Assembly (NCBI GenBank): GCA_946965045.2
Contig: OX337234.1
Coordinates: 744,001-808,000 of the forward strand
DNA length: 64,000 bases
Direction: 5' to 3'
From: Epithemia pelagica
Lineage: Eukaryota; Protista; Bacillariophyta
Shown here: positions 11,161-60,266 of the stretch, piece after piece
Layout of the letters: each line of letters starts with the position of its first letter
How positions within the stretch are numbered: the first letter of the stretch is position 1
Notes under the pieces: generated by a model
What the model was told of the DNA's origin: nothing
Seen by the model: the letters and a program-made list of their open reading frames with translations, nothing else
The model's database searches: none
Program-made: the position numbers and the translations under genes

Positions 11161-11310
11161 TTTGTTTATCGCCAAAAGAATCTTTACTCTCCAGCAGTTG
11201 GAATCCGTCAAGAGAAATCACACGGTCACATGTCAATTAATGACAGCAGGCCCATCTACTGAAAGATCACCGCTGGATTTTGAAACAAACCATGTTTCCG
11301 CGCGAGCCCG

Positions 11311-17436: not shown

Positions 17437-17654
17437 GATACGGATCCAACAGCATCCCTCGTCCGATGTCAGGAGCGGAAGGAGTAAGGTACTCTCTAGA
17501 TAGACTCTAGGTAGTAAACAGAGACCCTTAGACTACTCCCAAGCAGGAGGGAGTCGCACATGAGTCGAACTCTCGATGCTCTCATTTTTGGGTCATTTCG
17601 CACATCGTGGCTTCCTTCGTTCCGTCCTCGTCGTCCTCCTCTTATTATTGGACC

Positions 17655-32793: not shown

Positions 32794-34197
32794 CTAGGAA
32801 CGAATCGATCCACCTCGTCTTGCATAAATGGTAAAGTAACCCTCTGGAATACCATTCTGTTGCTGCTTTGATGATCTCTTGTGGTTATCCACTCGCTTTG
32901 GAGCTTCTTCGTCGTAGAAGACAACCCGCCTGGGACTCCCGCTGGTCAACGACCCCAAGAAAGGCTCTTCTTCAAATCGGACGAGCTCGCATGGACTAAA
33001 ACAAACAGTTTCCTCAATGCCATAGAGATGTCGAATTCCCATTGATTTCAAAGTAGTGAGACTTACAACAAAGAATGGCTTGTGTTCCCAAGAGTTTTGG
33101 ATGAGAAACTCTAAATCTCCATTCACGAGACGAGCGCCCACGACAAGAACGGCATGGTTGGGGTTGAGAAACTGTGCGGACTGTTCCTCATGCCACGGCG
33201 CGCGAAATAGCAAATCGTCACTGTCGATAAGCTCTTGTGTGACCTTCAATCCCTCAATCATGTATGCACCGTTTGTCTGCAGTGTCTCTGAGAAAATGTC
33301 AAAGAGCGTACGAGCTCTGAGACAGGAAATTGGAATTTTGTGGTTGACTTCTATCTCGGGATTCTGTTCCTGCAGGAGTCTTTTGGCATGAGGCTCTAAA
33401 TGGCCACCGTCGCCGCGAAAGATATTGGAAAAGATCTCTTTGGGGGAGAATCTGTTCCGCATGTACCGACACACATTGATGTGTTTGTACTTTGGCTCTT
33501 TCTCCACAACATCATCCGAGGAGCTAGTTCTTTTCTTTACTCGTTGAAGTTCGCCCAAGTAGTAAATGGCGTTCGCCACCACGACAGCGTAGCAGATCGT
33601 TGAGTCTTGTCGCTGGTATCGGAGAAAGGGTTTGACACCTTCATCAAAAAGGGTTACCTTGGTTTCGGATTTTTCGGTACCCCATTCTGGATGGCGTTGA
33701 AGAAAGTCTGCAAATTTCGAATGACCAGAATCACCAGAGTCTTCTTCGTCGCCTTTCTTCCGGACAAAGGCATCAAGTCTCTTTCCAAATGCAGACTCGG
33801 GATCCATTACAGCGTCGATGAGATTTTGGAATATACAGTTTGGGTCTTTTTGAACTAGTTCAGGCTGCTTCTTGAGCAGGAGGAACGCTGCCTTGACCTT
33901 TTGGATTCCGGTGAGTGTGCTCCATTCATGGCGACTAGCAAGAGAATTCCATTCGACAGCTATAGCGTGAATAGGACGGTCCGATAACTTTGCTTGGGGA
34001 GGTGTACATTTGTTCTGCTGAAAGAGGTCGTGGACCGTCTTTAGTCGAGTCTTTGGAGACTGAATACTTCCCGTCGTCTCTTCTTCCTCGTCAGCCTCGG
34101 TGGACGCCGTTACACTTTGAAGATCGGGAATATCCTCAAACTTGCTCCAGTCCATACTCTCAACAGTCTCGTGATTGTTGATGGCTTCTTGACTCAT
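32794..34197 (-). CDS. papain-like cysteine peptidase, array copy (EIEVNHK cassette)
   Basis: 467 aa. QRQDSTICYA, NHAVLVVG and IQNSWE are intact. Confidence 0.82.
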   Translation of the reverse strand: MSQEAINNHETVESMDWSKFEDIPDLQSVTASTEADEEEETTGSIQSPKTRLKTVHDLFQQNKCTPPQAKLSDRPIHAIAVEWNSLASRHEWSTLTGIQKVKAAFLLLKKQPELVQKDPNCIFQNLIDAVMDPESAFGKRLDAFVRKKGDEEDSGDSGHSKFADFLQRHPEWGTEKSETKVTLFDEGVKPFLRYQRQDSTICYAVVVANAIYYLGELQRVKKRTSSSDDVVEKEPKYKHINVCRYMRNRFSPKEIFSNIFRGDGGHLEPHAKRLLQEQNPEIEVNHKIPISCLRARTLFDIFSETLQTNGAYMIEGLKVTQELIDSDDLLFRAPWHEEQSAQFLNPNHAVLVVGARLVNGDLEFLIQNSWEHKPFFVVSLTTLKSMGIRHLYGIEETVCFSPCELVRFEEEPFLGSLTSGSPRRVVFYDEEAPKRVDNHKRSSKQQQNGIPEGYFTIYARRGGSIRS

Positions 34198-34532
34198 TGT
34201 GTAATACTTTCGGTCCTGATCAATATATGAAAAGCAAGAACTCAGACCGTGGACAAAGTTCTACCTTAGTTGTCTTCTTGTGATTTTGGGACTGTGAGAG
34301 GCGTTTCGCAGTTTCGTTTTCGATCGTGGAGGAACACATTGCGCTGCGGGATTAGACTCTCGGAATCGAACGACGTGCAGGCGCGTTTACGCTCCCCCTT
34401 GTGTTGTTGTGAGCCACACAAAACGGCGATCGATTTCCTAGTAAAGGTAGATCCATGGAACGCTAGGCGGACCTGACTGGAATTTTCAAAGCAATAAAAG
34501 GTATACTGTAGCGGTCCATTCCTTTGCTGTTT

Positions 34533-34883
34533 TTATGTTGTTTCCTGTTCTTCTTCTTCTTCTTGTGATTGTTTGCATTGGGCCAGATGCTCTTGCAACT
34601 TCACGAGGCAATTGGCGGCCTGGAGATAGGATTGCAAACACGCACGAGCCTCTTGTTGCGCCCGATGCAATTCCTTGGGTGGCAAAGCTCCCGCCAACAA
34701 TTCCAAAGGATCCATCAAGCCATTGGGAGAAAAAGAGGAAGCCAATGACGACGACGACGACACGGGTGGTTGAGACTCGGACTTGGCGGGTTCTTCCTCT
34801 GTTTCAGTCACAACCAACATTATTCCAGGAGTGGTTGTAGTCTTGTGGTCCGTTGTGCCCTTGTTTCGTCGTCGTTGTCGCAA
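34533..34883 (-). CDS. short ORF resembling the C-terminus of CCDC115/Vma22; repeated in each unit (also 39473, 50722, 55662, 60602; relatives at 29528 and 24839)
   Basis: DPLELLAGALPPKELHRAQQEARACLQSYLQAAN resembles the DPLxxFGxLxPxxLRxAQ motif. The N-terminal half of the family is not recognisable, so it may be a fragment. Confidence 0.3.
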   Translation of the reverse strand: MRQRRRNKGTTDHKTTTTPGIMLVVTETEEEPAKSESQPPVSSSSSLASSFSPNGLMDPLELLAGALPPKELHRAQQEARACLQSYLQAANCLVKLQEHLAQCKQSQEEEEEQETT

Positions 34884-37733
34884 TCCTGTTTGTTCGGTGG
34901 GAGCATGGATTCGTCGGCTTGGTTCGCTTCTTCTACTGCTTCTTCACGATGCAAGTCGGGAATGTCACCATCCGTTTTCGTTTGTTTCGTGGTTCGTTCC
35001 GCCTTGGTTACTGTGATTGTGGTTGTTTGAGTGGTGGTCGTTGGTCCAGATCAAGGAGACATGAGTCGTGGTGGTGCCTGGTGCGTCTTGTTGTGTATTA
35101 TTCTTGTTGTGATCTGTAGTCGCACATGGAGGCGAGTGGACTTTCCCATCGTACATTGGAAGCGGTGCAGTAGGATTCCATGGCCAATAGTGCAGTAGCT
35201 GTAACCGAGAAAGACAGCACAGGTGTCGTTGATCTCCAAAGTTTTTTTCCCAATGAGCGTCTGTAGCCGACGGAAGTTTGAGTGTGGTGATGGCTTATCG
35301 ACTTGTGCACCCCAAAATACCGTCTTGAAATTCCGGTAATGTTGAGCAGAAAGATGTCAAGCCTGCGACAACACCCACAGTCAACAAGCGATTTGACAGG
35401 CGTCAAAACACATGAGACAACCGCATCTCCAATGTCGTATAAGACATCCGGGCAAAATAATGCGTCTGGTCATGATCGCCTGTGTTTTGACCCTCAAAGC
35501 CAACCCGAAATGCCCAGGTATCAAAAGCACTCGGTATCTTTAAATCATGGTTGAAAGCCTTTTTTCTCTTGAACTTCCTGTGGCCTTGTCGCTCGGGTAG
35601 GTGCCAGCTACAGTTAGGACGACAACAGCATGCGGAGAGCTGCAAATGTCCAATACGGTTAGCGTGGAGGCCTCAGAACCATTCTGTGCACACAAAATAG
35701 ATGGCCTCCCGTTTCAAAATAGTGAAAACCGTCACCTAGAACGATTCTAATATCACAATTCGAAAATCAGCAACACAACCGATTGGAATACCGCCTTCGT
35801 AGACTTGGCCAAACGCGTAGGGGAGCAAACAAGAGGAGCAAAGCTGCCAAACATTTTGTGGACCCTGATCGTTGCCCTCATCGCTGGATAGATGCTTTGA
35901 GCAGATCGTGCATCTTTATTTCGGCACTCTGCTGCTTCTGTCGTTGTCGCTTGCATATTCCATGACTGAATGGGCTTGATGCATGCTCTCACTCTTTCAG
36001 GTGCAACGACCAAAAGGTCTTTGCTGTTCAACGTCAGTCCGTCGTCTCGGCTTTAGTAATCCAACTGTAACTGTGGGCAATGAGATATTCTTGATTGGAG
36101 CAAGGACAATGATCAACAGCAAACGTCGGTCACGCAGTGATCATAACGATAGCCCAGGTGCGTTGAAGAAAGATAGTCGGTTTGGAAAGTATTACAAAAT
36201 GAAGTCTGTTGGTCTATACCTGAAGGAGCCCTTCGCAATGTCATGACTCGAGACAGTGTAGACCTTGATTGGGAGAAGAACTATGAAGACCACATATCGA
36301 AGCCCGCATGTGATTCCATGGATGGTCCTGCCTAAAAGATAACGAACGATTCTCAAAGTTAATCTGTAGGTTTACCGGACGGTGCCGCAATTAACGCAAT
36401 GACAAGGGAAGATGTTGACCCGAGGGCTCTGGAATTAGACTGGGACAAGAAATATGAAGCAAAACACTGGAAGAGGAAATCTGTTGGCTTACCCGACGGA
36501 TGTTGTGATATGAGAGAGCTTGGATTTAGAACGTCAATTCTAGGCGACAGCGTTGGAGAAAAAGACCAGTGTGCTACAATATTTGGTCAAGTTGGGATGA
36601 AAAACGATGAAGAGCTCCTCAAGTTCAGGAAAGATCTAGAGCATGCGAAAAAAACCCAAGTCTGTACTCATGGCAGCGATTTCATCGAAGGCTGAGACAC
36701 AATAAGATGCTTCAAACAACGGAAAGCCGGATTGATGGCTGCAAAAGCATCTAAAGGGCAACCCAAAGATGTCAAGCCCTCCGATGGGGAAAATCCGGAT
36801 TGATGGCAGCGATTGCTGCAAAAAGGTCCCAAAACGACAATGACTCTAACGACTAAGGAGGGAGATCTGGATTGATGGTGGCCATTGCCGTCTTGGTGCC
36901 GAAGAATGACACCGCAGATGCTAACAATGATGGAGCAGGATTGGTTGGCTGCAAATGCCGCCAGAGCGCCATATCATGAGAGCACCAAGAATGACAAAGC
37001 GGGATTGATGGCCGCGATTTCCAACAAGGCACCGAAAAATACCAGTAACTCGAATAACAGAGGAGGAAGAGCTGCCTTAGTGGCCACCAAGGGGCCGAAG
37101 AATGAAATGTTCCAGTCTTAGTTAACCAACTACTTGGAGAAACTCGTGTTGTAACTCCATCGTTTTGTTCAAAGATAGAGCCACTTGCTATTCACACTAT
37201 TGTTAGAACTTGACGCAGTAGGCAGTTCCAGTCAAACTGTGATAGTGGACAGCTACTACCGGCAACAAGAATAGCAACAAGTCGGTCACCATTCGGTCCA
37301 ACTAAAGTGACCTGGGTATGCGTGATTTGCCGATGCTCATGGCGGACACTCAATCGGCACGTCGTCCACTACGGGGTTGGGCGTCACATTCACCAAGGAA
37401 GCAGGGTCAGGAGAAGCCTGGATTGAAGCCGGACCCCCGAATCGAGGTGCCAGTTCTTCGAGATCGACCCTTCCTTGGCCAAGCTAGGATTCAATCAAGC
37501 TACCTAGGTAGTATCCATGCCCAGATAGGGGGGATTGAGGTCTTTTGATTCCTTCATTACAATCGATTTCAGTGTTTTGAGTACATAGGCCAATTTTATT
37601 ACCGAAATAGTGGGAACTTGATCTAACGACCCGGATACGTCGAACCAATTTATCATTTTGCGTTCCAACGGCCACTACATGTAGAGAACTGCAATCTGCA
37701 TTCTTGCCCTCAGTAGAGAAGCTGCTGCTACTA

Positions 37734-39137
37734 CTAGGAACGAATCGATCCACCTCGTCTTGCATAAATGGTAAAGTAACCCTCTGGAATACCATTCTGT
37801 TGCTGCTTTGATGATCTCTTGTGGTTATCCACTCGCTTTGGAGCTTCTTCGTCGTAGAAGACAACCCGCCTGGGACTCCCGCTGGTCAACGACCCCAAGA
37901 AAGGCTCTTCTTCAAATCGGACGAGCTCGCATGGACTAAAACAAACAGTTTCCTCAATGCCATAGAGATGTCGAATTCCCATTGATTTCAAAGTAGTGAG
38001 ACTTACAACAAAGAATGGCTTGTGTTCCCAAGAGTTTTGGATGAGAAACTCTAAATCTCCATTCACGAGACGAGCGCCCACGACAAGAACGGCATGGTTG
38101 GGGTTGAGAAACTGTGCGGACTGTTCCTCATGCCACGGCGCGCGAAATAGCAAATCGTCACTGTCGATAAGCTCTTGTGTGACCTTCAATCCCTCAATCA
38201 TGTATGCACCGTTTGTCTGCAGTGTCTCTGAGAAAATGTCAAAGAGCGTACGAGCTCTGAGACAGGAAATTGGAATTTTGTGGTTGACTTCTATCTCGGG
38301 ATTCTGTTCCTGCAGGAGTCTTTTGGCATGAGGCTCTAAATGGCCACCGTCGCCGCGAAAGATATTGGAAAAGATCTCTTTGGGGGAGAATCTGTTCCGC
38401 ATGTACCGACACACATTGATGTGTTTGTACTTTGGCTCTTTCTCCACAACATCATCCGAGGAGCTAGTTCTTTTCTTTACTCGTTGAAGTTCGCCCAAGT
38501 AGTAAATGGCGTTCGCCACCACGACAGCGTAGCAGATCGTTGAGTCTTGTCGCTGGTATCGGAGAAAGGGTTTGACACCTTCATCAAAAAGGGTTACCTT
38601 GGTTTCGGATTTTTCGGTACCCCATTCTGGATGGCGTTGAAGAAAGTCTGCAAATTTCGAATGACCAGAATCACCAGAGTCTTCTTCGTCGCCTTTCTTC
38701 CGGACAAAGGCATCAAGTCTCTTTCCAAATGCAGACTCGGGATCCATTACAGCGTCGATGAGATTTTGGAATATACAGTTTGGGTCTTTTTGAACTAGTT
38801 CAGGCTGCTTCTTGAGCAGGAGGAACGCTGCCTTGACCTTTTGGATTCCGGTGAGTGTGCTCCATTCATGGCGACTAGCAAGAGAATTCCATTCGACAGC
38901 TATAGCGTGAATAGGACGGTCCGATAACTTTGCTTGGGGAGGTGTACATTTGTTCTGCTGAAAGAGGTCGTGGACCGTCTTTAGTCGAGTCTTTGGAGAC
39001 TGAATACTTCCCGTCGTCTCTTCTTCCTCGTCAGCCTCGGTGGACGCCGTTACACTTTGAAGATCGGGAATATCCTCAAACTTGCTCCAGTCCATACTCT
39101 CAACAGTCTCGTGATTGTTGATGGCTTCTTGACTCAT
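37734..39137 (-). CDS. papain-like cysteine peptidase, array copy (EIEVNHK cassette)
   Basis: 467 aa, same protein sequence as 32794..34197. Confidence 0.82.
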   Translation of the reverse strand: MSQEAINNHETVESMDWSKFEDIPDLQSVTASTEADEEEETTGSIQSPKTRLKTVHDLFQQNKCTPPQAKLSDRPIHAIAVEWNSLASRHEWSTLTGIQKVKAAFLLLKKQPELVQKDPNCIFQNLIDAVMDPESAFGKRLDAFVRKKGDEEDSGDSGHSKFADFLQRHPEWGTEKSETKVTLFDEGVKPFLRYQRQDSTICYAVVVANAIYYLGELQRVKKRTSSSDDVVEKEPKYKHINVCRYMRNRFSPKEIFSNIFRGDGGHLEPHAKRLLQEQNPEIEVNHKIPISCLRARTLFDIFSETLQTNGAYMIEGLKVTQELIDSDDLLFRAPWHEEQSAQFLNPNHAVLVVGARLVNGDLEFLIQNSWEHKPFFVVSLTTLKSMGIRHLYGIEETVCFSPCELVRFEEEPFLGSLTSGSPRRVVFYDEEAPKRVDNHKRSSKQQQNGIPEGYFTIYARRGGSIRS

Positions 39138-41420
39138 TGTGTAATACTTTCGGTCCTGATCAATATATGAAAAGCAAGAACTCAGACCGTGGACAAAGTT
39201 CTACCTTAGTTGTCTTCTTGTGATTTTGGGACTGTGAGAGGCGTTTCGCAGTTTCGTTTTCGATCGTGGAGGAACACATTGCGCTGCGGGATTAGACTCT
39301 CGGAATCGAACGACGTGCAGGCGCGTTTACGCTCCCCCTTTTGTTGTTGTGAGCCACACAAAACGGCGATCGATTTCCTAGTAAAGGTAGATCCATGGAA
39401 CGCTAGGCGGACCTGACTGGAATTTTCAAAGCAATAAAAGGTATACTGTAGCGGTCCATTCCTTTGCTGTTTTTATGTTGTTTCCTGTTCTTCTTCTTCT
39501 TCTTGTGATTGTTTGCATTGGGCCAGATGCTCTTGCAACTTCACGAGGCAATTGGCGGCCTGGAGATAGGATTGCAAACACGCACGAGCCTCTTGTTGCG
39601 CCCGATGCAATTCCTTGGGTGGCAAAGCTCCCGCCAACAATTCCAAAGGATCCATCAAGCCATTGGGAGAAAAAGAGGAAGCCAATGACGACGACGACGA
39701 CACGGGTGGTTGAGACTCGGACTTGGCGGGTTCTTCCTCTGTTTCAGTCACAACCAACATTATTCCAGGAGTGGTTGTAGTCTTGTGGTCCGTTGTGCCC
39801 TTGTTTCGTCGTCGTTGTCGCAATCCTGTTTGTTCGGTGGGAGCATGGATTCGTCGGCTTGGTTCGCTTCTTCTACTGCTTCTTCACGATGCAAGTCGGG
39901 AATGTCACCATCCGTTTTCGTTTGTTTCGTGGTTCGTTCCGCCTTGGTTACTGTGATTGTGGTTGTTTGAGTGGTGGTCGTTGGTCCAGATCAAGGAGAC
40001 ATGAGTCGTGGTGGTGCCTGGTGCGTCTTGTTGTGTATTATTCTTGTTGTGATCTGTAGTCGCACATGGAGGCGAGTGGACTTTCCCATCGTACATTGGA
40101 AGCGGTGCAGTAGGATTCCATGGCCAATAGTGCAGTAGCTGTAACCGAGAAAGACAGCACAGGTGTCGTTGATCTCCAAAGTTTTTTTCCCAATGAGCGT
40201 CTGTAGCCGACGGAAGTTTGAGTGTGGTGATGGCTTATCGACTTGTGCACCCCAAAATACCGTCTTGAAATTCCGGTAATGTTGAGCAGAAAGATGTCAA
40301 GCCTGCGACAACACCCACAGTCAACAAGCGATTTGACAGGCGTCAAAACACATGAGACAACCGCATCTCCAATGTCGTATAAGACATCCGGGCAAAATAA
40401 TGCGTCTGGTCATGATCGCCTGTGTTTTGACCCTCAAAGCCAACCCGAAATGCCCAGGTATCAAAAGCACTCGGTATCTTTAAATCATGGTTGAAAGCCT
40501 TTTTTCTCTTGAACTTCCTGTGGCCTTGTCGCTCGGGTAGGTGCCAGCTACAGTTAGGACGACAACAGCATGCGGAGAGCTGCAAATGTCCAATACGGTT
40601 AGCGTGGAGGCCTCAGAACCATTCTGTGCACACAAAATAGATGGCCTCCCGTTTCAAAATAGTGAAAGCCGTCACCTAGAACGATTCTAATATCACAATT
40701 CGAAAATCAGCAACACAACCGATTGGAATACCGCCTTCGTAGACTTGGCCAAACGCGTAGGGGAGCAAACAAGAGGAGCAAAGCTGCCAAACATTTTGTG
40801 GACCCTGATCGTTGCCCTCATCGCTGGATAGATGCTTTGAGCAGATCGTGCATCTTTATTTCGGCACTCTGCTGCTTCTGTCGTTGTCGCTTGCATATTC
40901 CATGACTGAATGGGCTTGATGCATGCTCTCACTCTTTCAGGTGCAACGACCAAAAGGTCTTTGCTGTTCAACGTCAGTCCGTCGTCTCGGCTTTAGTAAT
41001 CCAACTGTAACTGTGGGCAATGAGATATTCTTGATTGGAGCAAGGACAATGATCAACAGCAAACGTCGGTCACGCAGTGATCATAACGATAGCCCAGGTG
41101 CGTTGAAGAAAGATAGTCGGTTTGGAAAGTATTACAAAATGAAGTCTGTTGGTCTATACCTGAAGGAGCCCTTCGCAATGTCATGACTCGAGACAGTGTA
41201 GACCTTGATTGGGAGAAGAACTATGAAGACCACATATCGAAGCCCGCATGTGATTCCATGGATGGTCCTGCCTAAAAGATAACGAACGATTCTCAAAGTT
41301 AATCTGTAGGTTTACCGGACGGTGCCGCAATTAACGCAATGACAAGGGAAGATGTTGACCCGAGGGCTCTGGAATTAGACTGGGACAAGAAATATGAAGC
41401 AAAACACTGGAAGAGGAAAT

Positions 41421-41889
41421 TGTTCAAAATAATGAGATATGGTCAGTGAATGAAGAAGTGCGACCAATATTCGGAACCGGCATTCGGAAGTAGAAGATTC
41501 GACCGACAAGAGACGAGTACCATCTTACCATCGTTATTCCAAAACAGAACAAATGAACCAATGGGCCGACCAAGTCTCATTTGGAGCAACGCGTCATCAA
41601 CAATAACGGCCCAAACAAGTCCAATACATAGAGAAACGAGATCCTATGGCATCCCATAACTGTCGTCGTCTAAACATTCTGACAGGCAAGAACGGGCTGG
41701 ACGACGATACATAGGAAACCAAGATGCAACAAAATCGCAAAAGATCTCCAATCTACTTTATCCAACGGCCGATGATCCAACGGATCACGGCCATCGCTAC
41801 GAGTAGAAGTAAAGACTAAGCACACAACTTAACTTTGTTTTACACGGGTTGAGCTCGTTCTTGTTGCCCACGGTAGCAGGAAAACAACA
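41421..41889 (+). repeat. 5' LTR of copia 2
   Basis: Matches 47256-47724. The one difference I found is G41783 vs C47618. Confidence 0.97.
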
Positions 41890-41903
41890 CGCTTCCTCTG
41901 CGC
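41890..41903 (+). promoter_or_regulatory. putative primer-binding site complementary to the D-arm of initiator tRNA-Met
   Basis: CGCTTCCTCTGCGC directly abuts the 5' LTR. Its reverse complement GCGCAGAGGAAGCG matches the conserved initiator sequence GCGCAG(C/U)GGAAGCG at 13/14. Confidence 0.55.
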
Positions 41904-41939
41904 TGTTACAGCTAAAACGTTGTCAATTCATCATCCACC

Positions 41940-43196
41940 ATGGCCGCAAATTTTGCCCTTTCACCCGCTCATGCCAACGCCAATCAAGTGATCAACTTCA
42001 CGACGGCAGGAGGAGCGAAGTTTTACAAGCAAGCGATTCGCGGATTGTACGATAGCGGAGATCTCTACGACCTTGAAGCCGACGGACTCAAGACGTTCCT
42101 TGATACTCTCCAAGACAGGATCGTTGAACAAAACTGGACTTCGATCTTTGCAATTCCAGAAGCGATCGCTGCCCCCGCCGCCAATCTTCGTTTGCTCACC
42201 AGCGAGTACGGTCGTGTCTCCTTGCAACAAGTCCGTGCCTATGTTGAACACTTCAATGGAGCCAATCGTCAGACACAGAATGCATACATGGCATACACTT
42301 GCATTATGTCATCACTTACCGACGACGCCAAGGCACAGGTCAATATTCGACGCGAAGACTTCACTATCGATGGGCGTGGTTCCGGACCCCTTCTCCTCAA
42401 GGTTTTGATCTCGTTGGCACATGTGGACACCGAAGCCACCGTTATGGTTCTACGCCAACGCCTGGCTGACCTTCACATCTATATTATGGATGTGAACGCG
42501 GACATCGCCAAGTTTAATTTCTACGTAGACGAGACGCTTCGGGCTCTCAACGCGCGCGGCGAGCAGACGCTCGACCTTCTACCGAATCTATTTAAGGCGT
42601 ACGAAACCGTGAACGACGATAACTTTCTCGAGTTCATTCGTCGCAAAAAGAACGCATATGAAGAAGGAGACAATCCAGGACTGACCCCGCGTCAACTAAT
42701 GAGCGTTGCTCGCACCAAGTACCAGACGCTCGTGGAACAGAAGAAATGGCAAGCTCTCTCGGCACGCGACCAGAAATTGATCGCACTTGAAGCATCCGTG
42801 AATAAACTCAAGGAACAGAAACGCAAGACTAACCCCAGTGACCAGAAGAAACAGACAAGCAAAGGGAAGACGGACAAGGCAACTGACAACGATAAGGCCT
42901 GGCTTACGGTGGGACCAAAGAGTGGTCAGTCCGAGACGAAGGAAGTCAACGGAAAAATGTGGTACTGGTGCAAGTGGCACGGAAAGTGGTCGACCAACAA
43001 AAACCACACGTCCGCAACGTGTAACGGACGTGGTCTGACAGGAGATAAGAAACGGGCCTACGACGCAGCCCACGAGAACAGCGATGATACCACGTCTGAG
43101 AACACGGGAACGAACCCAGGACTCCGCCTTGCTAGCGCCTTAGCCGGTGCTACCCACGATGAAGACGATGACAGCGACAACAGCACCGACGAGTGA
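41940..43196 (+). CDS. gag: copia 2 gag
   Basis: 418 aa with C-terminal WYWCKWHGKWSTNKNHTSATC Cys/His motif. Ends in TGA in the same frame as pol. Confidence 0.88.
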   Translation: MAANFALSPAHANANQVINFTTAGGAKFYKQAIRGLYDSGDLYDLEADGLKTFLDTLQDRIVEQNWTSIFAIPEAIAAPAANLRLLTSEYGRVSLQQVRAYVEHFNGANRQTQNAYMAYTCIMSSLTDDAKAQVNIRREDFTIDGRGSGPLLLKVLISLAHVDTEATVMVLRQRLADLHIYIMDVNADIAKFNFYVDETLRALNARGEQTLDLLPNLFKAYETVNDDNFLEFIRRKKNAYEEGDNPGLTPRQLMSVARTKYQTLVEQKKWQALSARDQKLIALEASVNKLKEQKRKTNPSDQKKQTSKGKTDKATDNDKAWLTVGPKSGQSETKEVNGKMWYWCKWHGKWSTNKNHTSATCNGRGLTGDKKRAYDAAHENSDDTTSENTGTNPGLRLASALAGATHDEDDDSDNSTDE

Positions 43197-47228: not shown

Positions 47229-47255
47229 CATCGACTCTACTCGGCCGAGAGGGAG

Positions 47256-47724: not shown

Positions 47725-48982
47725 GGAAATCTGTTGGCTTACCCGACGGATGTTGTGATATGAGAGAGCTTGGATTTAGAACGTCAATTCTAGGCGACAG
47801 CGTTGGAGAAAAAGACCAGTGTGCTACAATATTTGGTCAAGTTGGGATGAAAAACGATGAAGAGCTCCTCAAGTTCAGGAAAGATCTAGAGCATGCGAAA
47901 AAAACCAAGTCTGTACTCATGGCAGCGATTTCATCGAAGGCTGAGACACAATAAGATGCTTCAAACAACGGAAAGCCGGATTGATGGCTGCAAAAGCATC
48001 TAAAGGGCAACCCAAAGATGTCAAGCCCTCCGATGGGGAAAATCCGGATTGATGGCAGCGATTGCTGCAAAAAGGTCCCAAAACGACAATGACTCTAACG
48101 ACTAAGGAGGGAGATCTGGATTGATGGTGGCCATTGCCGTCTTGGTGCCGAAGAATGACACCGCAGATGCTAACAATGATGGAGCAGGATTGGTTGGCTG
48201 CAAATGCCGCCAGAGCGCCATATCATGAGAGCACCAAGAATGACAAAGCGGGATTGATGGCCGCGATTTCCAACAAGGCACCGAAAAATACCAGTAACTC
48301 GAATGACAGAGGAGGAAGAGCTGCCTTAGTGGCCACCAAGGGGCCGAAGAATGAAATGTTCCAGTCTTAGTTAACCAACTACTTGGAGAAACTCGTGTTG
48401 TAACTCCATCGTTTTGTTCAAAGATAGAGCCACTTGCTATTCACACTATTGTTAGAACTTGACGCAGTAGGCAGTTCCAGTCAAACTGTGATAGTGGACA
48501 GCTACTACCGGCAACAAGAATAGCAACAAGTCGGTCACCATTCGGTCCAACTATAGTGACCTGGGTATGCGTGATTTGCCGATGCTCATGGCGGACACTC
48601 AATCGGCACGTCGTCCACTACGGGGTTGGGCGTCACATTCACCAAGGAAGCAGGGTCAGGAGAAGCCTGGATTGAAGCCGGACCCCCGAATCGAGGTGCC
48701 AGTTCTTCGAGATCGACCCTTCCTTGGCCAAGCTAGGATTCAATCAAGCTACCTAGGTAGTATCCATGCCCAGATAGGGGGGATTGAGGTCTTTTGATTC
48801 CTTCATTACAATCGATTTCAGTGTTTTGAGTACATAGGCCAATTTTATTACCGAAATAGTGGGAACTTGATCTAACGACCCGGATACGTCGAACCAATTT
48901 ATCATTTTGCGTTCCAACGGCCACTACATGTAGAGAACTGCAATCTGCATTCTTGCCCTCAGTAGAGAAGCTGCTGCTACTA

Positions 48983-50386: not shown

Positions 50387-53300
50387 TGTGTAATACTTTC
50401 GGTCCTGATCAATATATGAAAAGCAAGAACTCAGACCGTGGACAAAGTTCTACCTTAGTTGTCTTCTTGTGATTTTGGGACTGTGAGAGGCGTTTCGCAG
50501 TTTCGTTTTCGATCGTGGAGGAACACATTGCGCTGCGGGATTAGACTCTCGGAATCGAACGACGTGCAGGCGCGTTTACGCTCCCCCTTTTGTTGTTGTG
50601 AGCCACACAAAACGGCGATCGATTTCCTAGTAAAGGTAGATCCATGGAACGCTAGGCGGACCTGACTGGAATTTTCAAAGCAATAAAAGGTATACTGTAG
50701 CGGTCCATTCCTTTGCTGTTTTTATGTTGTTTCCTGTTCTTCTTCTTCTTCTTGTGATTGTTTGCATTGGGCCAGATGCTCTTGCAACTTCACGAGGCAA
50801 TTGGCGGCCTGGAGATAGGATTGCAAACACGCACGAGCCTCTTGTTGCGCCCGATGCAATTCCTTGGGTGGCAAAGCTCCCGCCAACAATTCCAAAGGAT
50901 CCATCAAGCCATTGGGAGAAAAAGAGGAAGCCAATGACGACGACGACGACACGGGTGGTTGAGACTCGGACTTGGCGGGTTCTTCCTCTGTTTCAGTCAC
51001 AACCAACATTATTCCAGGAGTGGTTGTAGTCTTGTGGTCCGTTGTGCCCTTGTTTCGTCGTCGTTGTCGCAATCCTGTTTGTTCGGTGGGAGCATGGATT
51101 CGTCGGCTTGGTTCGCTTCTTCTACTGCTTCTTCACGATGCAAGTCGGGAATGTCACCATCCGTTTTCGTTTGTTTCGTGGTTCGTTCCGCCTTGGTTAC
51201 TGTGATTGTGGTTGTTTGAGTGGTGGTCGTTGGTCCAGATCAAGGAGACATGAGTCGTGGTGGTGCCTGGTGCGTCTTGTTGTGTATTATTCTTGTTGTG
51301 ATCTGTAGTCGCACATGGAGGCGAGTGGACTTTCCCATCGTACATTGGAAGCGGTGCAGTAGGATTCCATGGCCAATAGTGCAGTAGCTGTAACCGAGAA
51401 AGACGGCACAGGTGTCGTTGATCTCCAAAGTTTTTTTCCCAATGAGCGTCTGTAGCCGACGGAAGTTTGAGTGTGGTGATGGCTTATCGACTTGTGCACC
51501 CCAAAATACCGTCTTGAAATTCCGGTAATGTTGAGCAGAAAGATGTCAAGCCTGCGACAACACCCACAGTCAACAAGCGATTTGACAGGCGTCAAAACAC
51601 ATGAGACAACCGCATCTCCAATGTCGTATAAGACATCCGGGCAAAATAATGCGTCTGGTCATGATCGCCTGTGTTTTGACCCTCAAAGCCAACCCGAAAT
51701 GCCCAGGTATCAAAAGCACTCGGTATCTTTAAATCATGGTTGAAAGCCTTTTTTCTCTTGAACTTCCTGTGGCCTTGTCGCTCGGGTAGGTGCCAGCTAC
51801 AGTTAGGACGACAACAGCATGCGGAGAGCTGCAAATGTCCAATACGGTTAGCGTGGAGGCCTCAGAACCATTCTGTGCACACAAAATAGATGGCCTCCCG
51901 TTTCAAAATAGTGAAAGCCGTCACCTAGAACGATTCTAATATCACAATTCGAAAATCAGCAACACAACCGATTGGAATACCGCCTTCGTAGACTTGGCCA
52001 AACGCGTAGGGGAGCAAACAAGAGGAGCAAAGCTGCCAAACATTTTGTGGACCCTGATCGTTGCCCTCATCGCTGGATAGATGCTTTGAGCAGATCGTGC
52101 ATCTTTATTTCGGCACTCTGCTGCTTCTGTCGTTGTCGCTTGCATATTCCATGACTGAATGGGCTTGATGCATGCTCTCACTCTTTCAGGTGCAACGACC
52201 AAAAGGTCTTTGCTGTTCAACGTCAGTCCGTCGTCTCGGCTTTAGTAATCCAACTGTAACTGTGGGCAATGAGATATTCTTGATTGGAGCAAGGACAATG
52301 ATCAACAGCAAACGTCGGTCACGCAGTGATCATAACGATAGCCCAGGTGCGTTGAAGAAAGATAGTCGGTTTGGAAAGTATTACAAAATGAAGTCTGTTG
52401 GTCTATACCTGAAGGAGCCCTTCGCAATGTCATGACTCGAGACAGTGTAGACCTTGATTGGGAGAAGAACTATGAAGACCACATATCGAAGCCCGCATGT
52501 GATTCCATGGATGGTCCTGCCTAAAAGATAACGAACGATTCTCAAAGTTAATCTGTAGGTTTACCGGACGGTGCCGCAATTAACGCAATGACAAGGGAAG
52601 ATGTTGACCCGAGGGCTCTGGAATTAGACTGGGACAAGAAATATGAAGCAAAACACTGGAAGAGGAAATCTGTTGGCTTACCCGACGGATGTTGTGATAT
52701 GAGAGAGCTTGGATTTAGAACGTCAATTCTAGGCGACAGCGTTGGAGAAAAAGACCAGTGTGCTACAATATTTGGTCAAGTTGGGATGAAAAACGATGAA
52801 GAGCTCCTCAAGTTCAGGAAAGATCTAGAGCATGCGAAAAAAACCCAAGTCTGTACTCATGGCAGCGATTTCATCGAAGGCTGAGACACAATAAGATGCT
52901 TCAAACAACGGAAAGCCGGATTGATGGCTGCAAAAGCATCTAAAGGGCAACCCAAAGATGTCAAGCCCTCCGATGGGGAAAATCCGGATTGATGGCAGCG
53001 ATTGCTGCAAAAAGGTCCCAAAACGACAATGACTCTAACGACTAAGGAGGGAGATCTGGATTGATGGTGGCCATTGCCGTCTTGGTGCCGAAGAATGACA
53101 CCGCAGATGCTAACAATGATGGAGCAGGATTGGTTGGCTGCAAATGCCGCCAGAGCGCCATATCATGAGAGCACCAAGAATGACAAAGCGGGATTGATGG
53201 CCGCGATTTCCAACAAGGCACCGAAAAATACCAGTAACTCGAATGACAGAGGAGGAAGAGCTGCCTTAGTGGCCACCAAGGGGCCGAAGAATGAAATGTT

Positions 53301-53922
53301 CCAGTCTTAGTTAACCAACTACTTGGAGAAACTCGTGTTGTAACTCCATCGTTTTGTTCAAAGATAGAGCCACTTGCTATTCACACTATTGTTAGAACTT
53401 GACGCAGTAGGCAGTTCCAGTCAAACTGTGATAGTGGACAGCTACTACCGGCAACAAGAATAGCAACAAGTCGGTCACCATTCGGTCCAACTATAGTGAC
53501 CTGGGTATGCGTGATTTGCCGATGCTCATGGCGGACACTCAATCGGCACGTCGTCCACTACGGGGTTGGGCGTCACATTCACCAAGGAAGCAGGGTCAGG
53601 AGAAGCCTGGATTGAAGCCGGACCCCCGAATCGAGGTGCCAGTTCTTCGAGATCGACCCTTCCTTGGCCAAGCTAGGATTCAATCAAGCTACCTAGGTAG
53701 TATCCATGCCCAGATAGGGGGGATTGAGGTCTTTTGATTCCTTCATTACAATCGATTTCAGTGTTTTGAGTACATAGGCCAATTTTATTACCGAAATAGT
53801 GGGAACTTGATCTAACGACCCGGATACGTCGAACCAATTTATCATTTTGCGTTCCAACGGCCACTACATGTAGAGAACTGCAATCTGCATTCTTGCCCTC
53901 AGTAGAGAAGCTGCTGCTACTA

Positions 53923-55326
53923 CTAGGAACGAATCGATCCACCTCGTCTTGCATAAATGGTAAAGTAACCCTCTGGAATACCATTCTGTTGCTGCTTTGA
54001 TGATCTCTTGTGGTTATCCACTCGCTTTGGAGCTTCTTCGTCGTAGAAGACAACCCGCCTGGGACTCCCGCTGGTCAACGACCCCAAGAAAGGCTCTTCT
54101 TCAAATCGGACGAGCTCGCATGGACTAAAACAAACAGTTTCCTCAATGCCATAGAGATGTCGAATTCCCATTGATTTCAAAGTAGTGAGACTTACAACAA
54201 AGAATGGCTTGTGTTCCCAGGAGTTTTGGATGAGAAACTCTAAATCTCCATTCACGAGACGAACGCCCACGACAAGAACGGCATGGTTGGGGTTGAGAAA
54301 CTGTGCGGACTGTTCCTCATGCCACGGCGCGCGAAATAGCAAATCGTCACTGTCGATAAGCTCTTGTGTGACCTTCAATCCCTCAATCATGTATGCACCG
54401 TTTGTCTGCAGTGTCTCTGAGAAAAGGTCAAAGAGCGTATGAGCTTTGCCAAGGAAAATTGGAAACTCATGGACGACCTTTTTGTCGGGATTCTGTTCCT
54501 GCAGGAGTCTTTTGGCATGAGGCTCTAAATGGCCACCGTCGCCGCGAAAGATATTGGAAAAGATCTCTTTGGGGGAGAATCTGTTCCGCATGTACCGACA
54601 CACATTGATGTGTTTGTACTTTGGCTCTTTCTCCACAACATCATCCGAGGAGCTAGTTCTTTTCTTTACTCGTTGAAGTTCGCCCAAGTAGTAAATGGCG
54701 TTCGCCACCACGACAGCGTAGCAGATCGTTGAGTCTTGTCGCTGGTATCGGAGAAAGGGTTTGACACCTTCATCAAAAAGGGTTACCTTGGTTTCGGATT
54801 TTTCGGTACCCCATTCTGGATGGCGTTGAAGAAAGTCTGCAAATTTCGAATGACCAGAATCACCAGAGTCTTCTTCGTCGCCTTTCTTCCGGACAAAGGC
54901 ATCAAGTCTCTTTCCAAATGCAGACTCGGGATCCATTACAGCGTCGATGAGATTTTGGAATATACAGTTTGGGTCTTTTTGAACTAGTTCAGGCTGCTTC
55001 TTGAGCAGGAGGAACGCTGCCTTGACCTTTTGGATTCCGGTGAGTGTGCTCCATTCATGGCGACTAGCAAGAGAATTCCATTCGACAGCTATAGCGTGAA
55101 TAGGACGGTCCGATAACTTTGCTTGGGGAGGTGTACATTTGTTCTGCTGAAAGAGGTCGTGGACCGTCTTTAGTCGAGTCTTTGGAGACTGAATACTTCC
55201 CGTCGTCTCTTCTTCCTCGTCAGCCTCGGTGGACGCCGTTACACTTTGAAGATCGGGAATATCCTCAAACTTGCTCCAGTCCATACTCTCAACAGTCTCG
55301 TGATTGTTGATGGCTTCTTGACTCAT
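53923..55326 (-). CDS. papain-like cysteine peptidase, array copy (DKKVVHE cassette)
   Basis: 467 aa with the triad intact. Alternative 17-aa cassette, and GVRL instead of GARL. Confidence 0.82.
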   Translation of the reverse strand: MSQEAINNHETVESMDWSKFEDIPDLQSVTASTEADEEEETTGSIQSPKTRLKTVHDLFQQNKCTPPQAKLSDRPIHAIAVEWNSLASRHEWSTLTGIQKVKAAFLLLKKQPELVQKDPNCIFQNLIDAVMDPESAFGKRLDAFVRKKGDEEDSGDSGHSKFADFLQRHPEWGTEKSETKVTLFDEGVKPFLRYQRQDSTICYAVVVANAIYYLGELQRVKKRTSSSDDVVEKEPKYKHINVCRYMRNRFSPKEIFSNIFRGDGGHLEPHAKRLLQEQNPDKKVVHEFPIFLGKAHTLFDLFSETLQTNGAYMIEGLKVTQELIDSDDLLFRAPWHEEQSAQFLNPNHAVLVVGVRLVNGDLEFLIQNSWEHKPFFVVSLTTLKSMGIRHLYGIEETVCFSPCELVRFEEEPFLGSLTSGSPRRVVFYDEEAPKRVDNHKRSSKQQQNGIPEGYFTIYARRGGSIRS

Positions 55327-58300
55327 TGTGTAATACTTTCGGTCCTGATCAATATATGAAAAGCAAGAACTCAGACCGTGGACAAAGTTCTACCTTAGTT
55401 GTCTTCTTGTGATTTTGGGACTGTGAGAGGCGTTTCGCAGTTTCGTTTTCGATCGTGGAGGAACACATTGCGCTGCGGGATTAGACTCTCGGAATCGAAC
55501 GACGTGCAGGCGCGTTTACGCTCCCCCTTTTGTTGTTGTGAGCCACACAAAACGGCGATCGATTTCCTAGTAAAGGTAGATCCATGGAACGCTAGGCGGA
55601 CCTGACTGGAATTTTCAAAGCAATAAAAGGTATACTGTAGCGGTCCATTCCTTTGCTGTTTTTATGTTGTTTCCTGTTCTTCTTCTTCTTCTTGTGATTG
55701 TTTGCATTGGGCCAGATGCTCTTGCAACTTCACGAGGCAATTGGCGGCCTGGAGATAGGATTGCAAACACGCACGAGCCTCTTGTTGCGCCCGATGCAAT
55801 TCCTTGGGTGGCAAAGCTCCCGCCAACAATTCCAAAGGATCCATCAAGCCATTGGGAGAAAAAGAGGAAGCCAATGACGACGACGACGACACGGGTGGTT
55901 GAGACTCGGACTTGGCGGGTTCTTCCTCTGTTTCAGTCACAACCAACATTATTCCAGGAGTGGTTGTAGTCTTGTGGTCCGTTGTGCCCTTGTTTCGTCG
56001 TCGTTGTCGCAATCCTGTTTGTTCGGTGGGAGCATGGATTCGTCGGCTTGGTTCGCTTCTTCTACTGCTTCTTCACGATGCAAGTCGGGAATGTCACCAT
56101 CCGTTTTCGTTTGTTTCGTGGTTCGTTCCGCCTTGGTTACTGTGATTGTGGTTGTTTGAGTGGTGGTCGTTGGTCCAGATCAAGGAGACATGAGTCGTGG
56201 TGGTGCCTGGTGCGTCTTGTTGTGTATTATTCTTGTTGTGATCTGTAGTCGCACATGGAGGCGAGTGGACTTTCCCATCGTACATTGGAAGCGGTGCAGT
56301 AGGATTCCATGGCCAATAGTGCAGTAGCTGTAACCGAGAAAGACAGCACAGGTGTCGTTGATCTCCAAAGTTTTTTTCCCAATGAGCGTCTGTAGCCGAC
56401 GGAAGTTTGAGTGTGGTGATGGCTTATCGACTTGTGCACCCCAAAATACCGTCTTGAAATTCCGGTAATGTTGAGCAGAAAGATGTCAAGCCTGCGACAA
56501 CACCCACAGTCAACAAGCGATTTGACAGGCGTCAAAACACATGAGACAACCGCATCTCCAATGTCGTATAAGACATCCGGGCAAAATAATGCGTCTGGTC
56601 ATGATCGCCTGTGTTTTGACCCTCAAAGCCAACCCGAAATGCCCAGGTATCAAAAGCACTCGGTATCTTTAAATCATGGTTGAAAGCCTTTTTTCTCTTG
56701 AACTTCCTGTGGCCTTGTCGCTCGGGTAGGTGCCAGCTACAGTTAGGACGACAACAGCATGCGGAGAGCTGCAAATGTCCAATACGGTTAGCGTGGAGGC
56801 CTCAGAACCATTCTGTGCACACAAAATAGATGGCCTCCCGTTTCAAAATAGTGAAAGCCGTCACCTAGAACGATTCTAATATCACAATTCGAAAATCAGC
56901 AACACAACCGATTGGAATACCGCCTTCGTAGACTTGGCCAAACGCGTAGGGGAGCAAACAAGAGGAGCAAAGCTGCCAAACATTTTGTGGACCCTGATCG
57001 TTGCCCTCATCGCTGGATAGATGCTTTGAGCAGATCGTGCATCTTTATTTCGGCACTCTGCTGCTTCTGTCGTTGTCGCTTGCATATTCCATGACTGAAT
57101 GGGCTTGATGCATGCTCTCACTCTTTCAGGTGCAACGACCAAAAGGTCTTTGCTGTTCAACGTCAGTCCGTCGTCTCGGCTTTAGTAATCCAACTGTAAC
57201 TGTGGGCAATGAGATATTCTTGATTGGAGCAAGGACAATGATCAACAGCAAACGTCGGTCACGCAGTGATCATAACGATAGCCCAGGTGCGTTGAAGAAA
57301 GATAGTCGGTTTGGAAAGTATTACAAAATGAAGTCTGTTGGTCTATACCTGAAGGAGCCCTTCGCAATGTCATGACTCGAGACAGTGTAGACCTTGATTG
57401 GGAGAAGAACTATGAAGACCACATATCGAAGCCCGCATGTGATTCCATGGATGGTCCTGCCTAAAAGATAACGAATGATTCTCAAAGTTAATCTGTAGGT
57501 TTACCGGACGGTGCCGCAATTAACGCAATGACAAGGGAAGATGTTGACCCGAGGGCTCTGGAATTAGACTGGGACAAGAAATATGAAGCAAAACACTGGA
57601 AGAGGAAATCTGTTGGCTTACCCGACGGATGTTGTGATATGAGAGAGCTTGGATTTAGAACGTCAATTCTAGGCGACAGCGTTGGAGAAAAAGACCAGTG
57701 TGCTACAATATTTGGTCAAGTTGGGATGAAAAACGATGAAGAGCTCCTCAAGTTCAGGAAAGATCTAGAGCATGCGAAAAAAACCCAAGTCTGTACTCAT
57801 GGCAGCGATTTCATCGAAGGCTGAGACACAATAAGATGCTTCAAACAACGGAAAGCCGGATTGATGGCTGCAAAAGCATCTAAAGGGCAACCCAAAGATG
57901 TCAAGCCCTCCGATGGGGAAAATCCGGATTGATGGCAGCGATTGCTGCAAAAAGGTCCCAAAACGACAATGACTCTAACGACTAAGGAGGGAGATCTGGA
58001 TTGATGGTGGCCATTGCCGTCTTGGTGCCGAAGAATGACACCGCAGATGCTAACAATGATGGAGCAGGATTGGTTGGCTGCAAATGCCGCCAGAGCGCCA
58101 TATCATGAGAGCACCAAGAATGACAAAGCGGGATTGATGGCCGCGATTTCCAACAAGGCACCGAAAAATACCAGTAACTCGAATAACAGAGGAGGAAGAG
58201 CTGCCTTAGTGGCCACCAAGGGGCCGAAGAATGAAATGTTCCAGTCTTAGTTAACCAACTACTTGGAGAAACTCGTGTTGTAACTCCATCGTTTTGTTCA

Positions 58301-58862
58301 AAGATAGAGCCACTTGCTATTCACACTATTGTTAGAACTTGACGCAGTAGGCAGTTCCAGTCAAACTGTGATAGTGGACAGCTACTACCGGCAACAAGAA
58401 TAGCAACAAGTCGGTCACCATTCGGTCCAACTATAGTGACCTGGGTATGCGTGATTTGCCGATGCTCATGGCGGACACTCAATCGGCACGTCGTCCACTA
58501 CGGGGTTGGGCGTCACATTCACCAAGGAAGCAGGGTCAGGAGAAGCCTGGATTGAAGCCGGACCCCCGAATCGAGGTGCCAGTTCTTCGAGATCGACCCT
58601 TCCTTGGCCAAGCTAGGATTCAATCAAGCTACCTAGGTAGTATCCATGCCCAGATAGGGGGGATTGAGGTCTTTTGATTCCTTCATTACAATCGATTTCA
58701 GTGTTTTGAGTACATAGGCCAATTTTATTACCGAAATAGTGGGAACTTGATCTAACGACCCGGATACGTCGAACCAATTTATCATTTTGCGTTCCAACGG
58801 CCACTACATGTAGAGAACTGCAATCTGCATTCTTGCCCTCAGTAGAGAAGCTGCTGCTACTA

Positions 58863-60266
58863 CTAGGAACGAATCGATCCACCTCGTCTTGCATAAATGG
58901 TAAAGTAACCCTCTGGAATACCATTCTGTTGCTGCTTTGATGATCTCTTGTGGTTATCCACTCGCTTTGGAGCTTCTTCGTCGTAGAAGACAACCCGCCT
59001 GGGACTCCCGCTGGTCAACGACCCCAAGAAAGGCTCTTCTTCAAATCGGACGAGCTCGCATGGACTAAAACAAACAGTTTCCTCAATGCCATAGAGATGT
59101 CGAATTCCCATTGATTTCAAAGTAGTGAGACTTACAACAAAGAATGGCTTGTGTTCCCAGGAGTTTTGGATGAGAAACTCTAAATCTCCATTCACGAGAC
59201 GAACGCCCACGACAAGAACGGCATGGTTGGGGTTGAGAAACTGTGCGGACTGTTCCTCATGCCACGGCGCGCGAAATAGCAAATCGTCACTGTCGATAAG
59301 CTCTTGTGTGACCTTCAATCCCTCAATCATGTATGCACCGTTTGTCTGCAGTGTCTCTGAGAAAAGGTCAAAGAGCGTATGAGCTTTGCCAAGGAAAATT
59401 GGAAACTCATGGACGACCTTTTTGTCGGGATTCTGTTCCTGCAGGAGTCTTTTGGCATGAGGCTCTAAATGGCCACCGTCGCCGCGAAAGATATTGGAAA
59501 AGATCTCTTTGGGGGAGAATCTGTTCCGCATGTACCGACACACATTGATGTGTTTGTACTTTGGCTCTTTCTCCACAACATCATCCGAGGAGCTAGTTCT
59601 TTTCTTTACTCGTTGAAGTTCGCCCAAGTAGTAAATGGCGTTCGCCACCACGACAGCGTAGCAGATCGTTGAGTCTTGTCGCTGGTATCGGAGAAAGGGT
59701 TTGACACCTTCATCAAAAAGGGTTACCTTGGTTTCGGATTTTTCGGTACCCCATTCTGGATGGCGTTGAAGAAAGTCTGCAAATTTCGAATGACCAGAAT
59801 CACCAGAGTCTTCTTCGTCGCCTTTCTTCCGGACAAAGGCATCAAGTCTCTTTCCAAATGCAGACTCGGGATCCATTACAGCGTCGATGAGATTTTGGAA
59901 TATACAGTTTGGGTCTTTTTGAACTAGTTCAGGCTGCTTCTTGAGCAGGAGGAACGCTGCCTTGACCTTTTGGATTCCGGTGAGTGTGCTCCATTCATGG
60001 CGACTAGCAAGAGAATTCCATTCGACAGCTATTGCGTGAATAGGACGGTCCGATAACTTTGCTTGGGGAGGTGTACATTTGTTCTGCTGAAAGAGGTCGT
60101 GGACCGTCTTTAGTCGAGTCTTTGGAGACTGAATACTTCCCGTCGTCTCTTCTTCCTCGTCAGCCTCGGTGGACGCCGTTACACTTTGAAGATCGGGAAT
60201 ATCCTCAAACTTGCTCCAGTCCATACTCTCAACAGTCTCGTGATTGTTGATGGCTTCTTGACTCAT
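58863..60266 (-). CDS. papain-like cysteine peptidase, array copy (DKKVVHE cassette)
   Basis: 467 aa, same protein sequence as 53923..55326. Confidence 0.82.
   Translation of the reverse strand: MSQEAINNHETVESMDWSKFEDIPDLQSVTASTEADEEEETTGSIQSPKTRLKTVHDLFQQNKCTPPQAKLSDRPIHAIAVEWNSLASRHEWSTLTGIQKVKAAFLLLKKQPELVQKDPNCIFQNLIDAVMDPESAFGKRLDAFVRKKGDEEDSGDSGHSKFADFLQRHPEWGTEKSETKVTLFDEGVKPFLRYQRQDSTICYAVVVANAIYYLGELQRVKKRTSSSDDVVEKEPKYKHINVCRYMRNRFSPKEIFSNIFRGDGGHLEPHAKRLLQEQNPDKKVVHEFPIFLGKAHTLFDLFSETLQTNGAYMIEGLKVTQELIDSDDLLFRAPWHEEQSAQFLNPNHAVLVVGVRLVNGDLEFLIQNSWEHKPFFVVSLTTLKSMGIRHLYGIEETVCFSPCELVRFEEEPFLGSLTSGSPRRVVFYDEEAPKRVDNHKRSSKQQQNGIPEGYFTIYARRGGSIRS

Follow-up and report, generated by a model that had tools for sequence, protein, structure and literature searches.

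Does a short, highly divergent patch in an otherwise homogeneous gene array mark a dedicated diversity-generating system, or can ordinary exchange among tandem copies account for it? The question is raised by a 64,000-nucleotide stretch of the diatom Epithemia pelagica (NCBI GenBank assembly GCA_946965045.2, contig OX337234.1, positions 744,001 to 808,000 of the forward strand; hereafter the window), which carries a tandem array of genes for a predicted papain-like cysteine peptidase. A first reading made from the sequence alone had proposed that a 45-bp cassette in these genes is swapped between copies to diversify protease specificity, possibly for recognition or defence. We consider ordinary gene-conversion mosaicism in a young array, with the patch in a tolerant surface loop and with no dedicated diversity-generating or defence system, to be the best account of the locus, at a probability of roughly 60%.

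The array and its 45-bp patch

The array, including an older terminal unit (U0), begins at approximately 27.8 kb and occupies all of the window to the right of that point. Its young units are 99.5 to 100% identical and, without the patch, differ by approximately 0.1%. Each unit holds one minus-strand open reading frame (ORF) of 467 amino acids (aa); no gene was recognizable in the other approximately 3.5 kb, and the small intergenic ORFs gave nothing relevant against Pfam. In the unit alignment, 30 columns are variable per approximately 4,940, and 17 of them fall within the patch, at 33311-33355 in U1 and 54440-54484 in U4. Seventeen of the 24 differences between these two units lie within the 45 bp (binomial P of approximately 7e-30, or approximately 3e-26 when corrected for all such windows), changing 11 of 17 residues. 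The patch occurs in two forms among the young copies. Form A, EIEVNHKIPISCLRART, is found in the copies at 32794, 37734, and 48983 (U1 to U3), and form B, DKKVVHEFPIFLGKAHT, in those at 53923 and 58863 (U4 and U5); the corresponding peptides are DKKVVHEFQIVCGKVHT in U0 and GKKVTRDFAIFPATGRV in a dispersed copy at 9164. Alignment and translation reproduced exactly what the sequence-only reading had given for the patch, namely its coordinates, approximately 17 mismatches per 45 bp, 11 of 17 changed residues, and the peptide strings of the A, B, U0, and 9164 copies with their assignments. The units and genes are as follows.

31716-64000, minus strand: young tandem array with a 4,940-bp period, units U1 to U5 and partial U6, running past the right end of the window
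27820-31715, minus strand: terminal unit U0, with the older paralogue inside
31716-36655: unit U1
36656-41420 and 47730-47904: unit U2, split by a Copia insertion
47905-52844: unit U3
52845-57784: unit U4
57785-62724: unit U5
From there to 64000: unit U6, partial, cut by the window end
27838-29250, minus strand: U0 gene (P0002), 470 aa, 9 to 22% diverged from the young copies, B-like patch
32794-34197, minus strand: peptidase-like gene of U1, 467 aa, form A, Ala355
37734-39137, minus strand: peptidase-like gene of U2, 467 aa, form A, Ala355
48983-50386, minus strand: peptidase-like gene of U3, 467 aa, form A with an otherwise B-linked allele 14 bp away (Ile/Leu301), a recombinant
53923-55326, minus strand: peptidase-like gene of U4, 467 aa, form B, Val355
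58863-60266, minus strand: peptidase-like gene of U5, 467 aa, form B, Val355
9164-10573, minus strand: dispersed paralogue (P0008), 469 aa, third patch form, a conversion mosaic
33311-33355, minus strand: patch form A, codons 281 to 295; also at 38251-38295 and 49500-49544
54440-54484, minus strand: patch form B; also at 59380-59424
54263 in U4, equivalent to 33134 in U1, minus strand: Ala/Val355 site, 7 residues past His348; Val is the state of U0 and the family consensus

Further copies were found in a search of 5.8 billion proteins, which returned only four clusters, three of them from ENA assembly ERZ21939226, and both patch forms are reproduced on contigs of that assembly. Contig ctg1302l stops inside U2, and its end matches window positions 22794-40640 at 100% identity; contig ctg1199l is a haplotig of 9159-23809 at 99.2 to 99.5% identity. 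Contig ctg1319l ends in the same type of array, with an A-type edge unit and then four B units, three of them complete and one partial. Should this contig represent the far end of the array in the window, the two edges would hold form A and the interior form B. The young units on the two contigs, at least nine, hold only two patch alleles. The edge copy of ctg1319l (L001 5063-6464; P0006) has form A and differs from U1 only by a deletion of 2 bp close to codon 341, which shifts the frame and gives a 393-aa product, and its unit is 5'-truncated where it meets a Copia-like flank. The patch and three nearby sites (54426, 54263, and 54220) combine into the following haplotypes.

U1, U2, and the ctg1319l edge unit: patch A; 54426 A, 54263 C, 54220 T
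U3: patch A; 54426 C, 54263 C, 54220 T
Two ctg1319l units: patch B; 54426 C, 54263 C, 54220 T
One partial ctg1319l unit: patch B; 54426 C, 54263 C, 54220 C
U4, U5, and one ctg1319l unit: patch B; 54426 C, 54263 T, 54220 C
U0: B-like patch; 54426 A, 54263 T, 54220 C

Recombination has therefore taken place beside the patch, with breakpoints at most 14 bp and at most 177 bp from it, and the protein P0001 joins form B with Ala355. A four-gamete test on eight complete units and nine informative sites gave a minimum (Rm) of at least 4 exchange events. The homogenized backbone around the patch, with exchange of sequence between units, was thus confirmed. The proposed linkage of an Ala/Val change to the patch held only in part: the change at codon 355 is real, but its linkage is not strict, as form B occurs with Ala in three of four ctg1319l units. 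Mosaicism extends to the older paralogues. U0 is near the 9164 copy over nucleotides 1 to 420 (1 to 4 mismatches per 60 nucleotides [nt]), and the young copies are near the 9164 copy over nucleotides 421 to 540. This mosaicism among units and older paralogues indicates that exchange is general to the locus and not specific to the patch. U0 is itself a hybrid, with approximately 2 kb upstream that is approximately 100% identical to the young units and divergence limited to the gene and its close flanks, indicating that homogenization ends near the gene start.

The other-haplotype allele of the 9164 paralogue, P0003 (L006 10001-11410), carries Asn368Asp, which replaces the predicted catalytic Asn, and Tyr203Asn, beside the catalytic Cys; P0008, from the window, retains Tyr203 and Asn368. 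Judging from these substitutions, one allele of this paralogue may be losing activity.

The peptidase family and the location of the patch

The gene had no Pfam match at an E value of ≤0.01, PF00112 (Peptidase_C1) included, and the same was true of all 70 relatives used for the alignment. Sequence matches in PDB to cathepsins L, S, and K were marginal (E values of 0.06 to 0.5) and covered NHAVLVVG...NSW. A profile search of 1.84 billion representative proteins yielded 194 relatives, 49 of them at E values of ≤1e-30; most are 430 to 550 aa long with both domains covered. When the 70-sequence alignment was used in a word-indexed profile search, only 6 proteins came back. Among 20 cluster look-ups, the sole organism-named relatives were MMETSP diatom transcripts from Entomoneis paludosa and Pseudo-nitzschia delicatissima, and the others came from metagenomes and one uncharacterized NCBI assembly.

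An AlphaFold model built with the 70 relatives had a predicted local distance difference test score (pLDDT) of 81 and a predicted template modelling score (pTM) of 0.81; a model built with 5 sequences (pLDDT of 37) was discarded. The top 50 PDB matches of the model in Foldseek were all C1A peptidases, including cathepsins S, K, and L, procerain, and ficin (probability of 1.0; E values of 2e-7 to 4e-6; template modelling scores, normalized to the target, of approximately 0.55 to 0.6), and the viral library also returned C1-like proteins, which were more distant. In the 70 relatives, conservation of Q195, C202, and H348 is 90% or higher, and the consensus contains QNSW. In the model, Cys202 starts helix 202-225 and His348 starts strand 348-358. 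The papain fold assumed in the sequence-only reading is borne out by the model, its structural matches, the conserved Gln, Cys, and His, and the NSW motif, and the patch does lie between catalytic Cys202 and His348. The gene product is predicted to be a papain-like cysteine peptidase (clan CA, C1-like) that is lineage restricted.

The protein consists of an acidic disordered N terminus (aa 1 to 38), a helical N-domain (approximately 55 to 190), and the catalytic domain (approximately 195 to 420). The N-domain aligns loosely to procathepsin K (Foldseek rank 50), and none of the window proteins had a Pfam match to the I29 propeptide. No signal peptide was apparent by eye in the acidic, nonhydrophobic N terminus (inspection only, with no predictor run). 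In our reading, this is a new divergent C1-like family in which the acidic disordered N terminus and the helical N-domain replace the signal peptide and the I29 propeptide.

The patch (aa 281 to 297) comprises in the model a strand (285 to 289), a loop, and the first turn of a helix (295 to 308), with a pLDDT of approximately 96. In a profile alignment to xylellain (3ois), the patch strand falls on the C1A strand 'NYKITEY', which is followed by the R-domain helix and the strand 'GSPFVF'; a cathepsin K alignment anchors His348 to His162. By secondary-structure order and a weak hidden Markov model (HMM) alignment, as opposed to superposed coordinates, the patch would correspond to cathepsin K residues approximately 105 to 120, including exosite 2. 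It is not among the canonical S3 to S2' subsite segments, as we take these to be in papain numbering. Cathepsin K exosite 2 (Gly109 to Glu118) is described as distant from the active site and needed only for elastin degradation (PMC5187916; PMC10707025). With the patch mapping to this strand-loop, the idea that it shapes substrate subsites was not borne out.

Origin of the two forms

Form B equals U0 at 15 of the 17 variant sites and differs from it at 5 of 45 bases, in line with the gene-wide divergence of 9 to 22% between U0 and the young copies. Form A is farther away, with 18 of its 45 bases different from those of U0 and approximately 20 of 45 from those of the 9164 copy. The pattern xK(K/N)(V/T)x(H/R)(E/D)F is common to form B, U0, the 9164 copy, and a 33%-identical homologue (P0004) and is not found in form A. 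Because form B shares these sites and this motif with U0, the 9164 copy, and P0004, it is the ancestral-like form and form A the derived novelty. There are approximately 15 derived changes in 45 bp versus approximately 0.1% over the other 4.9 kb, which argues for one replacement event and against independent point mutations. The proportion of synonymous differences (pS) in the patch is 0.32, approximately 100-fold over that in the rest of the gene, a pattern typical of sequence that is old or was replaced and not of point changes driven by selection. With form B ancestral-like, the direction of exchange, which had been left open, is settled in part; no donor of form A was found.

We propose that recent amplification of the gene gave rise to the tandem array with its 4.94-kb period, the homogeneity of which would be upheld by unequal crossing-over and gene conversion. 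Form A would have been made by one discrete replacement on a form-B-like background, most likely by ectopic conversion of a short tract, the donor being a divergent gene of the family outside the sampled portion of the genome, or, as a fallback, by a single complex mutation. The replacement would have fallen in a strand-loop on the protein surface that tolerates structural change, lies apart from the catalytic cleft, and is possibly exosite-like; homogenizing exchange between units would then have copied and recombined both forms among them.

Several observations weigh against this account. At codons 291-292, TGT is shared by form A and U0, and TTC-C.T is shared by form B and the 9164 copy; such sharing means a reticulate history and not one clean event. 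The apparent position of form A at the array edges, with form B inside, suggests under simple unequal-crossover models that form A is older within the array, an order that conflicts with the outgroup polarity. No form-A donor was present in the window or in 11 related loci (chance matches of ≤11 nt only), the back-translated form-A peptide had 0 matches in JGI metagenome contigs, and a 76-aa cassette-bearing piece searched alone for short relatives or ORFs gave no candidates. Nor was an A-like patch found among 166 retrieved family proteins. Because no donor was found, the conversion step is one that we infer. In cathepsins K and V, the loop in this position serves as a functional exosite, so the patch need not be neutral. 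Finally, when U0 is compared with the 9164 copy in 60-nt windows of the catalytic domain, divergence also peaks in the patch region, and recurrent selection on the loop could account for this peak just as well.

Selected functional diversification is an unlikely alternative. The loop would be an exosite or partner surface with its alleles under balancing or diversifying selection and its flanks homogenized, giving at least two isoforms with different macromolecular targets. Consistent with this, the loop corresponds to cathepsin K/V exosite 2, which is reported to control elastin degradation without an effect on small substrates (PMC5187916; PMC10707025), and the recombination breakpoints hug the patch. 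The ORF and catalytic residues are intact in all five complete young copies of the window. Within the catalytic domain, variation among paralogues and family-wide is greatest in this loop, which has the highest column entropy (3.2 to 3.7 bits across 66 distant relatives) and adjoins insertions and indels. However, only two alleles exist in at least nine young units, so a repertoire of cassettes was not borne out. Forms A and B differ by 13 nonsynonymous and 3 synonymous differences over 15 codons, and the resulting ratio of nonsynonymous to synonymous proportions (pN/pS) of 1.16, with approximately 10 synonymous sites, is indistinguishable from 1, and the synonymous differences are likewise elevated. 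A nonsynonymous excess in the patch is thus not supported, the sites being too few to decide. Among >90%-identical variants in five pairs or sets (four other family members and the two alleles of the 9164 copy), none of approximately 20 substitutions falls in aa 281 to 297. The gene-wide pN/pS between paralogues is 0.70 to 0.76, indicating generally weak constraint, with the catalytic core conserved. Two homologues on longer metagenome contigs each stand alone amid common cellular genes, for instance those for kinases, BRO1, an E2 enzyme, an epimerase, and a phosphodiesterase. With these two homologues single-copy among ordinary genes and close variants invariant in the loop, a dedicated mechanism or defence context found no support.

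It is improbable that the two forms come from separate haplotype arrays joined into one contig by a phase switch in the repeat. The genome is indeed heterozygous, as ctg1199l matches 9159-23809 at 99.2 to 99.5% identity and is without a transposon insertion, on both sides the contigs of the independent assembly end within the array, and the window has a single A-to-B transition, between U3 and U4. Such an assembly or phasing artefact is at odds with ctg1319l, which also links a truncated A-type edge unit to B-type units, and with U3, where form A is recombined with the B-linked allele 14 bp off. B-type units occur on three different flanking haplotypes, indicating that A and B forms have recombined together, and unit-specific single-nucleotide polymorphisms would allow long reads to thread the array.

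A local mutational burst without a homologous donor is more improbable still. The edges of the patch are sharp within otherwise identical sequence, and the donor searches in the window, the 11 loci, JGI metagenomes, and short ORFs came back empty, as such a burst would have it. Its particular forms could nevertheless be rejected. No inversion of a sub-segment lowers the 17 mismatches, which rules out a micro-inversion, and a gapped alignment still leaves 14 mismatches and 2 gaps, which rules out compensated indels or frameshifts. As for a quasi-palindrome or a template switch nearby, the 600 bp on each side hold no match of ≥9 nt over A-specific bases in direct or reverse-complement orientation, and 8-mer matches are at chance level. 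Mutagenesis in the style of a diversity-generating retroelement (DGR) is ruled out by substitutions that hit all four bases, with no adenine bias, and the nearby reverse transcriptases come only from long terminal repeat (LTR) retrotransposons.

We regard it as very improbable that a cytosolic protease family of the diatom lineage uses the loop as a recognition exosite, with the array as a repertoire shuffled by very short conversion tracts under balancing selection, for example against viral or parasite targets; if true, it would be a protease-based recognition system in a protist.

Surrounding elements and comparison with known systems

The window is eukaryotic, transposon- and Copia-rich, and intron-poor, with a GC content of approximately 48%, and tRNA and Rfam scans of it gave zero matches. 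Together with the diatom transcripts among the relatives of the peptidase, the paucity of introns, the many Copia elements, and the GC content would point to a diatom. Its transposons are as follows.

41421-47729, plus strand: young Copia LTR retrotransposon in the intergenic part of U2, with a gag-like ORF at 41940-43196 and pol at 43233-47228
5315-8341: Copia-type pol
18747-22637: Gypsy-type pol (RVP, RVT_1, RNase H)
12811-14475: PIF/Harbinger DDE transposase ORF, inside a segment of approximately 3.2 kb at 11490-14704

The LTRs of the U2 Copia element start at 41421 and 47256, are identical over their first 362 bases, and are accompanied by a short target-site duplication. The insertion is in no other array unit, and contig ctg1302l of the independent assembly ends approximately 780 bp short of its site. 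Upstream of the Copia pol at 5315-8341 and overlapping it is a 1,754-aa ORF (54-5318) without a Pfam match, which may be an unusually long gag or accessory region. The C-terminal stretch of the Gypsy pol matches the GST_C_2 glutathione-S-transferase domain (E value of 9e-7) in both haplotypes (L006 1166-5056 in the other), an unusual fusion for a retrotransposon. The PIF/Harbinger segment (approximately 11490-14704) is missing from the 99.2 to 99.5% identical haplotig ctg1199l (L006) and looks like a heterozygous transposon insertion. Just outside it are 10-bp tandem repeats at 11098-11161 (GGATGTCGGA) and 11311-11373 (AAACGACATC) with an inverted GATGTCG core. Left of U0, degenerate fragments of a further older array unit (24796-27607) retain 80 to 92% identity to intergenic parts of the unit, and adjoining them is a 4HBT thioesterase-like ORF on the minus strand (22457-23404; E value of 2e-4).

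The array protein shares with C1A peptidases (cathepsins S, K, and L, procerain, and ficin) the fold, with Cys at a helix N terminus and His at a strand start, as well as the Gln-Cys-His-Asn order and the 'NHAVLVVG' and 'NSW' motifs. Unlike them, it is without a Pfam match, is only approximately 15% identical to cathepsins, and in place of a recognizable I29 propeptide has the acidic disordered N terminus and a helical domain of approximately 135 aa. A papain-like family without a Pfam model is thereby documented, with approximately 190 representatives that are mostly metagenomic and diatom transcripts as the only named ones. As with exosite 2 of cathepsins K and V, the patch lies in the strand and loop before the R-domain helix that precedes the 'GPVSV' strand, matched by secondary-structure order and the weak HMM alignment. 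If the loop is a functional exosite, the two natural variants would offer material, already in existence, for studying how an exosite drives specificity.

Programmed cassette systems (pilE/pilS, vlsE, VSG, and chicken immunoglobulin pseudo-V) and DGRs resemble the array in having a variable segment between conserved flanks that permit recombination. In contrast to the cassette systems, the array has two alleles instead of tens and no silent donor archive, and all of its copies are equivalent full-length genes except for the one frameshifted edge copy. Unlike DGRs, it has no pair of template repeat and reverse transcriptase and no second copy of the patch nearby; the reverse transcriptases are those of Copia and Gypsy pol. 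Because of the number of alleles, the position of the patch, the pattern of substitutions, and the family context, the claim of a cassette or defence system is unsupported. Near-identical units, mosaic variants, and a short divergent island are what the array has in common with concerted evolution accompanied by short-tract conversion in the major histocompatibility complex, plant resistance-gene clusters, and ribosomal DNA-like arrays, although its island has two alleles only, unlike those cases. The evidence most likely favours ordinary concerted evolution with a tolerant surface loop over a new recognition or defence mechanism, and the locus offers a clean example of a 45-bp island of high divergence in a nearly identical tandem array.

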